Assembly: GCA_048013815.1 (NCBI GenBank) | Contig: CM106585.1 | Location: 62,001-126,000, forward strand | Direction of reading: 5' to 3' | Source: Setoptus koraiensis | Taxonomy: Eukaryota > Animalia > Arthropoda | Length of the DNA: 64,000 nucleotides | Part shown: positions 24,305 through 29,370 of the stretch, piece by piece | How positions within the stretch are numbered: the stretch's first letter is position 1 | How the letters are laid out: each line of letters starts with the position of its first letter | The notes under the pieces: model-generated | The model's database searches: none | Told to the model about the DNA's origin: nothing | What the model saw: only the letters and a program-made list of their open reading frames with translations | Translations under genes and position numbers: made by a program

Positions 24305-24538
24305 GTTGGTAGTTTTTTAAAAAGGTTTCTACGCCCTGACCAATTGTCATTCTGCAACTTGTCGTTTCCTAATTCCACACAGTAGCGCTTCGAATCAGTT
24401 GTAAATCGTTAGTGTTTTGATTGAATCTCCCAATAGTCACAATCATTCACTATATCCATATAGACATATAGAACATATAAACGTAATATCCACATTATAT
24501 ACACCAGTAGAAAAAGCGAGTGATAATTGCTGTTAAAA

Positions 24539-26166
24539 ATGTTGTCAACTTTAGGTGAGCATTAGGCCGCGTTCGTAAACAATATCGGCAAATTCTGATT
24601 TGAAGATATTGTTTGAAAACAACACACTATTCGTGCAAACAACACAATCTTACAACTTACCTCTTTGCCCTTTCTTTGCCTTGCATTCGGACAACATTTT
24701 CATTTGCAGCATACCCGCTAGTAGCTCTAGTGCTAGTTCTGAATGCCTCTCAACTGATATTAGGCCAATTCGGAGGCCCACTACCACCGTTGCCACCTAT
24801 GCGTGGACCTGTCGGACCGGATGGCATGTTCATTGATGAGCTTGCTCCGTATGGTGGTCACCCGCCCGCAATAGTTACCGCCGGCGTTCATCATCCATCG
24901 TCAAACAATTATCCGATTGGTAAAAAAGACGAATATGAATCCAGTAGCAAAACGAAGGATGGCGACACCAAGAAGAAATCTAAAAAACAATCAGATAAGC
25001 ACAAGGAGAAAAACAAAGAATATGATAGCTCATATCCTATCGTTCGAGATCATTCCTATAGAACACACGAATCGTATGGACCAACAGAAGACAATTATAA
25101 GTACGAGCATGAGGATTACAAAGAGAAACATGGAAAAAAGGAATTCAAAACAACTACAACAACGCCAGCGCCAGGAGCATGGTCCTCTCTATCAAATGCC
25201 TGGAGTGAGTATATCAAAAGCACTGTATTCAGACCGCATTTCGTTCATTATTTTTGAATGGCATGCAACTTAACTGACTAATTGTTTGATTTTTCATCGG
25301 TATCATTTACTTAATTAGGCCGACTGTCATCATTTGGTGGAGCAAGTGACGCGAGATCGGCAAGAAGATTTCGACGTGATGTAGCGACTGGTGATGTAAT
25401 TCATGATGACAAATCACAGCAGCAACAGCAACAGCAACAATCTCAAAATCACGAACCACAAAAAGATGAGCAACAATCGATTAGTTTGGAACAGCAACCA
25501 GACACTCAGGCACAACAACAATTGCAACAGGAACTTTTGAGACAACTGCAGTTACATATGCTGCTACAAGACCCGCACCAGCTACAACAAGTACAGCAAC
25601 AACAACAGCAACAACAACAAACGGTGGCGAACGAAAAAGATGCAAAGAAAGACGAGAAGCTGACCGAAACTACACGTGTCAAGCGAAACATTCCAGAGGC
25701 TTTCCTGGGCCCGCCGGCAGCAGCACCTCATATCGACTTGCCAGCGGCAATAATTAAAGAGGTACACAAACAACAAGAACAACCACAACAGGTTATCCAG
25801 CAGCAGCAACAACAACAACAACAGGTTCAGCTACAAGAGAAGCCCGGCGTTCAGCAGATAGAACAACAACAACAACAACAGCAACAGCAGATCCAATTAA
25901 AAGAAAAACCTGGCGTTCAACAGATAGAACAACAACAGCAACAGCAACAAACATCCGTTGTTGCGCCTAGCCCATCCCTTTCGGGTGATTTGAATGCGCT
26001 AACCACCACCAATCAACAACAGCAGCAGCAACAACAGGTTGTTGTCAAAAATGATGCAACACCGGCTTATACTACTCGTGTTCATGAAACAATCAAGACA
26101 TCCATTCCAACCCAATATGTTTATCTGAAGGTGCCTAAGCATCTGATTTGTGGCGCACATTATTAA
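24539..26166 (+). CDS. Secreted Gln-rich orphan precursor with two furin-type sites; exons 24539-24554, 24710-25204, 25319-26166
   Basis: Splicing gives signal peptide MLSTLAYPLVALVLVLNASQLILG-Q, then Pro/Gly-rich and Lys/Glu-rich segments, RRFRR-DV and RVKR-NI sites, polyQ tracts and two EKPGVQQIE repeats. All junctions are GT-AG and phase-consistent. Confidence 0.8.
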
Positions 26167-26564
26167 TTAGGTCAATAATCAAACTGATCTACTAATGACA
26201 GATTAGCACGCATCAGTTAATAAATAATTGATGTCATTCAATTGATTGGACATAATGTCATAGCATCAAATGGTGGCTGAATAAGAAATAAAGCAAGCAA
26301 CCTCAAGTGAAGAGTGATTCTAACACTCATGCGAAGTACAAGGGTATTGTGTGTATTTTTAACAATTGAGAATGTCTAAATAAACTTTGCTTGTGAAGTG
26401 TTCAGCTAAATATAGCGACAGGTAAAAAATAGCGTCGCTTTCACATTTCTCTATTCATTTCGTTGACATGATGCACATAATCTCTTGTTTTGTTTCCTGA
26501 CAGTTTCGACGGATCTACATCGAAGTAGAACAATATTGATAGGTAGTTAATTTTCGGCTAAAAA

Positions 26565-27269
26565 ATGATGCGAAGATTCGGCAGCTGGCTTCTGTTAGCT
26601 TGCATGCTATCCGTTGCCGTACTAGTGAGTGGACAGGAAGAAACAGTGGACAACAATGGTGATAATTCAAATGATTTCAATCGAGATCATGAATCTGAAC
26701 TAGATCCAGCGGCCGCCGCTACAACGGGTTGCTACTCCTCACGAGATATCGAGCGAGGCATGTACCTCTATGAACAATCAGATAAAGAGGAATCAGCCGA
26801 GTCTTTAGAAGCTGCAAATGAATGGTTTGATTTCACTAACATAGTAATGTTACGCTGTCTACAGCTCGTAGATCTAGACTTGTTAGATGATTTTGTGACA
26901 GAGGATATAAAACTTTTTCATGAAACAACACAATCGTTGCTTGATTTACAGCCCGATCAATTTAAGATTTTTCTAAATCTGGGCAAAGTCGGGGACGAAC
27001 CACAAGTGGCCAGCGATTACAAGATACAACATAAGCAATTATTTGATAAAGTTCTCGAAGAGAAAAATCTGAAGAGAAACGTTATAGATTTGGATTGTGT
27101 TGTTTATAACGATAAATACAAGAAACAAATGAGGAGAGCCAATAAGTGGGCCAATATAGAAAATATGTATCCTCAACAAGTATATTATCTTATGGTGTCA
27201 AACGATCGTTTATTATATCATAGTTTGGTAGCCGATGTTTGTGATGCATACTTAGACAGTGATCTATAA
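26565..27269 (+). CDS. Secreted acidic orphan protein, 234 aa, intronless (paralog A)
   Basis: Signal peptide MMRRFGSWLLLACMLSVAVLVSG-Q. Mature region has four Cys and LMVSNDRL. Confidence 0.82.
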   Translation: MMRRFGSWLLLACMLSVAVLVSGQEETVDNNGDNSNDFNRDHESELDPAAAATTGCYSSRDIERGMYLYEQSDKEESAESLEAANEWFDFTNIVMLRCLQLVDLDLLDDFVTEDIKLFHETTQSLLDLQPDQFKIFLNLGKVGDEPQVASDYKIQHKQLFDKVLEEKNLKRNVIDLDCVVYNDKYKKQMRRANKWANIENMYPQQVYYLMVSNDRLLYHSLVADVCDAYLDSDL

Positions 27270-27507
27270 CAATAACGGATAATAATATATCCATATTTTA
27301 TAAACAATCATCATCATTAGGTCTATACTGTACTGATACATTACATAACAACAACAACAGCATGTAAAGCCTGACAGAAGCGCGAGATGCGCTTGCATAA
27401 CTGTCGCAGTCGATAGACTATACCGGCGTCCATATCCACAGATGCTGAGATATCACTAATAAATAAAATAGACCTTTACACATTGATTGAACCAATTTCT
27501 GGTTTAG

Positions 27508-28128
27508 ATGTATCGGTTTCATTTGGTGTCAATATATTTGCTACCTCTGGCAGTATTGCTGAGATTCAACTACGTCTCTTTTGCTGATGTAACAGGCAAC
27601 AGCGATGCGATCTGTTTCAACTGGAGCGAAGTTGAACAAGCCAGGGCTATTGATACAGCAACAAAGAGAACCATGTTCATTGAAAGTATTTTCAAGAGAT
27701 GCTTGAAACAATTGAATAATAAAAAAGATGTTTACAAAGTGCCAACAAATATATTAGCGTTGGGAGACTACGTGCTGGAACTTAAAACAAATCTGAATAA
27801 CGAGGTCGGCAAAAGGGATGAGACCAATACTGGCGAATATCTTGTCAGAATGTATCATAAATCGGATACAACAAATGTGGGCATAAACATGAAACAATTC
27901 GATCTATTTTGTGATGGCTACAATGCTGACAAGTTGGATATTTTAACCCAGTGTAGCGAACTGATAACCAATTATAATTTACTGACAAATCACTTGCGTC
28001 AGTGGCAAATACTAATGAGAATGTCCGAAACTGATGCACTGCAATTGATGTTAAACAACGACAACAGATTGTTTAATGTCAACGGTTACATCATATTATG
28101 TCAGAACGTGATCAGTATCTCAATATGA
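27508..28128 (+). CDS. Secreted orphan protein, 206 aa, intronless (paralog B)
   Basis: Signal peptide MYRFHLVSIYLLPLAVLLRFNYVSFA-D. RCL, DLFCDGYN and LMLNNDRL motifs are colinear with paralog A. Confidence 0.8.
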   Translation: MYRFHLVSIYLLPLAVLLRFNYVSFADVTGNSDAICFNWSEVEQARAIDTATKRTMFIESIFKRCLKQLNNKKDVYKVPTNILALGDYVLELKTNLNNEVGKRDETNTGEYLVRMYHKSDTTNVGINMKQFDLFCDGYNADKLDILTQCSELITNYNLLTNHLRQWQILMRMSETDALQLMLNNDNRLFNVNGYIILCQNVISISI

Positions 28129-28501
28129 CATATTTAACATGGTTTTTTATGATCGTACAGTTTATCCAGGATCACAGAATTGGAGAGATACTTGTAAATT
28201 GCATAGTAAATGGCCGACTGATGAATCACTCAACAACGAAACTACTGTGAGCTCACTATAGAGTGTGATGTTATTCCAATTAGTAGATAAAAACAAAGAG
28301 ATAAAGTTCAATTAACTATGTTTGTTTTTTTTTAATCGTATAAAAGAGAACGACAATTGTAACGAGAAAGGAATATTCTATCATTTGTCACTACTACTAA
28401 ATGTGTCAAGTTAGTATTTCTCCTGCGCGATTCCGGAACAAAACTTTATGCCACAAATCATAAAATTATTGTAATTATTATATGTAGACGTAGAGAGACA
28501 A

Positions 28502-29221
28502 ATGACTAGGTGTGACATTATGTTCAACGGAAGTTCTAAATTAGTTGGTTTATCGCCTGTGGCTCATGCATTCATAATTCAGTCGCTTCTTTTCATTATT
28601 CATTGTAAGCTATTCCCATGAACATGATAAGACTGATCGATATAAATTCTCAGACTAGATTAGTAATCTATATCTACAACCACAATCTATTCAGGTGAAT
28701 CAAGTGAGATCTTCAGAAGTAGCAGCTATTCTAGCAGTAGCTTGAGTGATGGAGGAGAGCGTATTACTATTTTTAAGGAATCGTCCGAAGGTACCGGCTT
28801 CAAACCTAAGACAAAATATACACAAATAGTTGAGACACCAAGGGGTACATTCGTCAATACGCAACCAACGGGCTTTGTTGAGGTATTGTCCGACAGGGAC
28901 ATTTTCACTAATAGCAGACGTAAAAACCAGAAGAATCGATTAACTGACCAAAGTCTTGGCCGTAGCACAAATAAAAATTATTACTTGCCGTATAACACCG
29001 AATCGCTATCCGACCAATATTACAGAAAGTCCAATCCTTATGCAAGGGATTTCGCAAAGGTGTTGGGAATAAAACAGGGTCATTACACTGATTTATATCA
29101 ACAAATTGACACCCCGAACAGACCACAAGAGAGTCCTCTCCAGGCTGTGCAAGAGACCCTAACATCGATAGCTCAGCAGATACAGCAAGAAGTCTCCGAT
29201 CCACTGTCCATCGGACGTTGA
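28502..29221 (+). CDS. Probable secreted orphan protein; exons 28502-28604 and 28695-29221
   Basis: Phase-1 intron (gtaagc...ctattcag) joins a hydrophobic leader (VAHAFIIQSLLFIIHC) to SSEIFRSSSYSSSSLSDGGERITIFKESSEG. Start may be 28502 or 28520. Confidence 0.7.
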
Positions 29222-29370
29222 TTATAATATGTGAACAAATGTGATTCGAGCTATGATAGAGAGGCTTGATTTGTTTGTTGGAAAAAAATCGAAAACAACT
29301 ACTACTGCAAATTTTGTATAAGAATCATAATTAATATAATAACAAACAATGATATAGTGATAAGCTTCTA

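Follow-up and report, generated by a model that had tools for sequence, protein, structure and literature searches.

Two adjacent orphan genes for probably secreted, clade-restricted proteins in Setoptus koraiensis

Genes A and B and their neighbours

In the 64-kb stretch of Setoptus koraiensis DNA analysed here (the window), two adjacent open reading frames, A and B, lie in the same orientation. Both are uninterrupted, and on neither strand does a further long ORF overlap either of them. They belong to an island, flanked by housekeeping genes, in which four genes share one orientation and have signal-like N-termini; besides A and B it contains a spliced, Q-rich gene upstream and, downstream, a gene with two exons. 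One 11-kb public-run contig from a relative, L001, carries an ortholog of A (P0001) and an ortholog of B (P0002) in the same order and orientation. The features referred to below are, in window coordinates:

24400-26423, upstream gene, with introns 24553-24707 and 25205-25318 (RNA contigs)
26401..26416, + strand, conserved TTCAGCTAAATATAGC block about 150 nt upstream of the A ATG, invariant in the L001 alignment
26565..27269, + strand, gene A, an intronless CDS of 234 aa plus stop (ORF)
26565..26633, + strand, predicted signal peptide of A, residues 1-23, MMRRFGSWLLLACMLSVAVLVSG, putative cleavage before QEE
27270..27507, + strand, A-B spacer of 238 bp, 73% mean column identity in the alignment with L001
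27457-27470, + strand, conserved A/T box TAATAAATAAAATA in the A-B spacer (alignment with L001)
27508..28128, + strand, gene B, an intronless CDS of 206 aa plus stop (ORF)
27508..27588, + strand, predicted signal peptide of B, residues 1-27, putative cleavage after VSFA
28436-28604 and 28695-29326, exons of the downstream gene, with a GT..AG intron at 28605-28694 (RNA contigs)

The preliminary description had reported two adjacent intronless genes with signal peptides. The two ORFs are found exactly at these positions, no intron is seen in A or B across the stretches covered by RNA-derived contigs, and each product starts with one hydrophobic segment resembling a signal peptide. In A this segment is the sole hydrophobic one (KD19 maximum of 2.02 at residue 5 in a hydropathy scan), and the candidate signal peptide has a positively charged n-region and small residues at -3/-1 and is conserved in the ortholog. 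The single N-terminal segment of B reaches KD 2.53 in its best 9-residue window, and that of its ortholog is stronger, at 3.60. All four proteins, that is A, B and the two orthologs, have one such N-terminal segment each, and hydropathy and sequence checks of A and B found neither a second membrane-like segment nor an ER-retention motif at the C-terminus. A and B are therefore probably secreted.

The mature proteins, of about 180-210 aa, differ in composition. Beyond the signal peptide A is acidic (mature pI ~4.4), its N-terminal stretch being rich in D, E, N and S, and B is near neutral (pI ~5.7). A has four conserved cysteines in this part (56, 98, 178 and 226, with spacings of 42/80/48 residues) and B has five (36, 65, 135, 149 and 198), all of them invariant in P0001 and P0002, respectively. 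The four-cysteine pattern originally proposed for the pair accordingly describes A, and B departs from it by one extra cysteine. B also has one NWS sequon, which is absent from P0002.

The flanking genes have features of their own. The product of the upstream gene, at least 456 aa in length, begins with a signal-like segment (MLSTLAYPLVALVLVL) and contains long runs of glutamine as well as clusters of basic residues (RRFRR, KR); the glutamine-repeat DNA at 25792-26046 breaks the public-run assemblies. The product of the downstream gene starts MTRCDIMFNG, includes a hydrophobic segment, possibly a signal peptide, and is otherwise S/T/Q-rich, and the gene has a dN/dS of 0.14 against the relative. 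The genome is compact and arthropod-type, with short introns (90-155 nt) and genes without visible introns at this locus, features in keeping with an eriophyoid-type mite.

Transcription, conservation and distribution

Both A and B are transcribed, apparently at a low level, as unspliced RNA-derived contigs cover both genes; the preliminary description had named absence of transcription as a finding against its proposal. Runs X7 and X8 can be called RNA-derived because their contigs show spliced GT..AG joints in the neighbouring genes (24553-24707, 25205-25318 and 28605-28694). Over A, unspliced contigs from runs X7, X8 and X9 (26640-26947, 26754-27375 and 27166-27467) are colinear over 26640-27467, and over B contigs from X7 and X8 span 27446-27668 and 27721-27961. 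Word depth is 2-5 over A and B and 19-36 over the upstream gene. Contig depth is a poor expression measure, and at its face value the low depth of A and B does not favour an abundant salivary protein.

The RNA contigs also bear on the non-coding DNA around the two genes. The contigs 27166-27467 (X8) and 27446-27668 (X7) overlap by 22 nt in the spacer and run through the TAATAAATAAAATA box, which would reflect either read-through of A into B, possibly as a dicistronic RNA, or a B transcript that starts upstream of TAATAAATAAAATA. From its sequence, the box could be the poly(A) signal of A and/or a TATA-like element for B. Between the stop of the upstream gene and A, conserved blocks GTGTATTTTTAACAATT and TTCAGCTAAATATAGC lie at 26347-26420; the RNA contigs of the upstream gene end at ~26423, so both blocks sit at its RNA 3' end. 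They could form the poly(A)/3' end region of the upstream gene, the promoter of A, for which TTCAGCTAAATATAGC is a TATA-like candidate, or both.

Downstream of B, the non-coding stretch 28205-28400 is ~80% identical to the relative (L001 ~2270-2470), above the 73% of the A-B spacer, and a TATAAAAG element occurs at ~28339-28346, some 75-95 nt ahead of the first RNA of the next gene. This stretch is probably the promoter of the next gene plus the 3' UTR of B. A 50-aa ORF (28098-28250) overlaps the stop of B and corresponds to a 55-aa gene call in the relative (L001 2194-2361), but the two products are only weakly similar (35% over 34 aa), and conserved 3' UTR or promoter DNA is a likelier reading of the stretch than a gene.

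The orthologs are 62% (P0001) and 69% (P0002) identical to A and B, and downstream of both on L001, as in the window, follow a small gene, TRAPPC9, PIG-P and Pcc1. At a dS of ~0.56 between the two species, dN/dS is 0.39 for A (bootstrap 95% interval 0.26-0.57; dN 0.22) and 0.31 for B (0.19-0.49; dN 0.17). These ratios are clearly below 1, and no bootstrap replicate for either gene reached 1; A and B are therefore under purifying selection as proteins. The constraint is relaxed relative to the neighbours, with dN/dS of 0.06 for the TRAPPC9 exon and 0.13 for PIG-P (dN of 0.021 and 0.046), and the dN of A and B is 8-10 times that of TRAPPC9. The ORFs are intact in both species, and the gaps in the orthologous protein alignments are of whole residues only. 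The rapid divergence attributed to the pair thus stands as a high rate of protein change (dN of 0.17-0.22 against 0.02 for TRAPPC9), but the pairwise dN/dS of 0.3-0.4 indicates constraint rather than pervasive diversifying selection.

Database searches returned few relatives. When 5.8e9 proteins were searched by word matching with A, B and the A profile, one ortholog each and nothing else came back. An exhaustive HMMER search, which covered B (A having been searched by word-based methods plus profile), found only B's own cluster among 1.84 billion representative proteins. Sequence searches of the PDB with both profiles, a scan of viral contigs for relatives of B and a scan of metagenome contigs with A gave no match, and tblastn detected no extra copy of A or B in the 64-kb window or L001. 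The genes accordingly appear to be confined to a narrow clade, represented by the Setoptus koraiensis genome and one relative. Further members of the family envisaged in the preliminary description were thus not found in the window, L001, or metagenome or viral contigs, nor, beyond the single ortholog of each gene, in public protein sets.

The absence of a recognised domain, also claimed earlier, agrees with these searches. In a Pfam scan at E up to 10, A gave only a sub-threshold, coiled-coil-type Nnf1 match and B none. A helical fold had likewise been suggested, and AlphaFold2, given two-sequence alignments (gene plus ortholog), predicts both proteins to be all-alpha. The model of A, at pLDDT 65, has a low-confidence N-terminal part of 57 residues followed by a helical core that carries the four conserved cysteines; from residue 101 the core is mostly at pLDDT 70-96, in one of five models only. 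The all-alpha assignment of B is at pLDDT 41, too poor for a fold comparison with A. Compared with AFDB clusters, the PDB (Foldseek and VIA-align) and the ESM Atlas, the A model matched no fold above noise, so that neither curated families nor, for the A model, solved or predicted folds gave a significant profile or structural match.

Arthropod chemosensory proteins (CSP/OS-D, PF03392) are small, secreted, all-helical proteins of ~110 aa with four cysteines in two disulfides, closely spaced as C-x6-C-x18-C-x2-C. A and B are likewise small, secreted and all-helical by prediction, and A also has four cysteines. However, the spacings of 42/80/48 residues in A, the mature lengths of both proteins and the lack of a Pfam match at E up to 10 set them apart. 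CSP/OBP-type binding proteins and a ferritin-like secreted pair were both rejected as candidates, there being no Pfam signal for either.

A possible common origin of A and B

The preliminary description had regarded A and B as highly diverged paralogs that share five motif pairs. Four of the pairs are present as written, and in the fifth the B motif is LMLNNDNRL, one residue longer than the quoted LMLNNDRL. Standard homology tests of A against B are non-significant. BLASTP aligned 26 residues of A and B around the LM..ND motif at an E of 0.74. The preliminary description had named a non-significant HMM-HMM alignment as a finding against its proposal, and such an alignment was obtained: hhalign, with two-sequence profiles that have little power, gave a probability of 0.75% at an E of 0.06-0.075, a score reached by 18/300 column shuffles (p 0.06), and its global mode aligned 7 columns only. 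In hmmsearch the true sequences rank at the ~5-15% level among shuffles. Smith-Waterman alignment of A and B beats shuffles at p 0.018-0.037, yet of 19 decoys, all real ORFs of the window, 1-2 reach an equally high z-score.

A comparison anchored on the cysteines was more favourable. Here the cysteine columns were held fixed, the other alignment columns of B were shuffled, and the best of five order-preserving pairings was taken for observed and shuffled data alike. Summed flanks of 4-10 residues gave p 0.0005-0.0085 (p 0.0004-0.06 with single sequences), in a test that was devised post hoc, after the earlier observation, and whose shuffle null ignores helical periodicity. Against a background of 167 cysteine-centred windows from other ORFs of the 64-kb window, the RCL block (C98/C65) scores 10 (p ~0.006) and the DLxCxxYN block (C178/C135) scores 14, which none of the 167 windows matched, and the first and last blocks are at chance level (p 0.23 and 0.38). 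The signal thus comes mainly from two of the five quoted blocks.

The individual blocks point in both directions. The C98 window of A also matches the window of the extra C149 of B, with a score of 12, and since one A window fits two B windows, generic helix patterns inflate the flank scores. The DLxCxxYN block is weakened because the D, L and N that A and B have in common there are not constant between orthologs. In the first block, the ortholog of A has CYSWKDVE and resembles the CFNWSEVE of B more closely than A does, as expected under homology. The LM motif reads LMVSNDRL in A and LLVSNDRL in its ortholog, and LMLNNDNRL in B and LIVNNNKRL in its ortholog; reduced to what all four share, it is L-x-[VL]-x-N-[DN]-(x)-R-L, with an indel of one residue, and no other region is aligned by BLASTP or hhalign. 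The last three predicted helices have 28/10/20 residues in A and 29/10/21 in B (AlphaFold2 secondary structure, with B at pLDDT 41), and the W lies 14 residues from the LM motif in both proteins. In that register, however, C178 of A would pair with C149 of B and not with C135, so that two registers compete.

On balance, A and B may well derive from an old tandem duplication, their sequences having become almost unrecognisable as related by the time the two species separated. We put this at ~60%: the genes are adjacent, co-oriented, similar in size and alike in their secretory and helical character, but the one test that reached significance was devised post hoc. If the genes are duplicates, the duplication predates the split, because both species have both genes. 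A serious competitor, though somewhat less probable, is that A and B are unrelated neighbours, that is, independent orphans of de novo origin or from separate ancestors that are alike through secretory and helical composition and chance matches at cysteine flanks. This would account for the non-significant BLASTP, hhalign and hmmsearch results, the real decoys with equal local alignment z-scores, the two blocks at chance, the double fit of the C98 window and the cysteine counts of 4 and 5. The protein-language-model neighbours of A and B, which are at noise level for A, do not overlap either, and in an island of four different secreted-looking genes adjacency alone implies no duplication. What chance resemblance explains poorly is that the cysteine-anchored p value stays at ~0.0005-0.01 despite best-of-pairings scoring and column shuffling, that the matches are colinear, and that the two proteins correspond in C-terminal helix lengths and in the W...LM..ND..RL spacing.

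Two further readings carry very little weight. The ORFs could be spurious, non-coding sequence open by chance, in keeping with homologs limited to one relative and low RNA depth; this is already refuted by reading frames intact in two species at the observed dS, gaps of whole residues, conserved cysteines and long motifs, dN/dS significantly below 1 and RNA-derived contigs over both genes. It is equally improbable that B, or both genes, are host-captured remnants of a viral class I fusion glycoprotein of the Baculovirus F or errantivirus Env type. The language-model neighbours of B do include Baculo_F, haemagglutinin, paramyxovirus F and coronavirus S2 clusters, and 9 of its 10 best named neighbours fall in one clan. 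Their scores of 0.68-0.75, however, lie below 0.8, the tool's stated noise level, A has no such neighbours, and neither Pfam at E up to 10, the viral contigs nor the exhaustive protein search yielded a relative. A Baculovirus F assignment (PF12259) of B was accordingly rejected, there being no profile match, no C-terminal membrane anchor and no viral relative.

Possible roles outside the cell

The picture that best fits the locus is of real, transcribed, clade-restricted genes for secreted helical proteins that are likely tandem duplicates, a reading to which, taken whole, we also give about 60%. Each protein would enter the ER by way of a cleavable N-terminal signal peptide, which would be removed before QEE in A and after VSFA in B. 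Each would then fold as an all-helical domain, probably braced by intramolecular disulfides: two in A, and two in B together with an odd cysteine that may be free or intermolecular. Both, lacking a membrane anchor and a retention motif, would be released outside the cell. Their job would be a lineage-specific extracellular one, which fits the narrow distribution and the fast protein evolution, and candidate settings are the host-plant interface (saliva) and reproduction.

A more specific proposal, made in part by the preliminary description, is that A and B act as salivary proteins or effectors that enter the host plant and manipulate it, and that they are subject to rapid diversifying selection. 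Genes that look secreted, clade-restricted and fast-evolving invite it. [quoted passage not shown] We nevertheless consider it unlikely in this form, because the average dN/dS of 0.3-0.4 speaks for constraint rather than pervasive positive selection, the RNA-run depth is low compared with neighbouring genes, and secreted proteins with reproductive, immune or structural roles would leave the same signature. More speculative still is the thought that A and B are the founders of a structurally new, disulfide-braced helical family of a small clade of plant-feeding, eriophyoid-type mites, released with the saliva and manipulating host-plant cells, with the fifth cysteine of B allowing covalent dimers or attachment to a target.

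The lineage-restricted secretome of A. lycopersici offers the closest comparison to the favoured picture of clade-restricted secreted genes. It too consists of signal-peptide proteins that are absent from the orthogroups of non-herbivorous arthropods, in a compact and mostly intronless genome, and its members are discussed as possible, unproven effectors (PMC7738191). It is a category and not a homologous family, and A and B have no sequence relative in the public protein sets searched. Spider-mite salivary proteins (Jonckheere 2016 and Villarroel 2016, as cited in PMC7738191) are, so far as that account describes them, also secreted, taxonomically restricted and free of recognisable domains. 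As presented there, they are backed by salivary-gland expression, saliva proteomics or in-plant assays, whereas A and B are known from sequence and RNA contigs. Database searches, as distinct from direct sequence comparison, gave no homology between the two groups.

Given the lineage-restricted share of the russet-mite secretome, orphan secreted genes are the rule in such genomes, and A and B are one pair among many in eriophyoid-type mites. If the two are duplicates, they illustrate that tandem neighbours can diverge until cysteine-anchored comparisons alone hint at a common origin. According to PMC7738191, the means by which eriophyoid mites suppress defences of the plant or induce galls are unknown, and clade-restricted secreted proteins are obvious candidates for either activity. 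To that pool of candidates A and B add two well-supported gene models that are conserved, constrained and transcribed.
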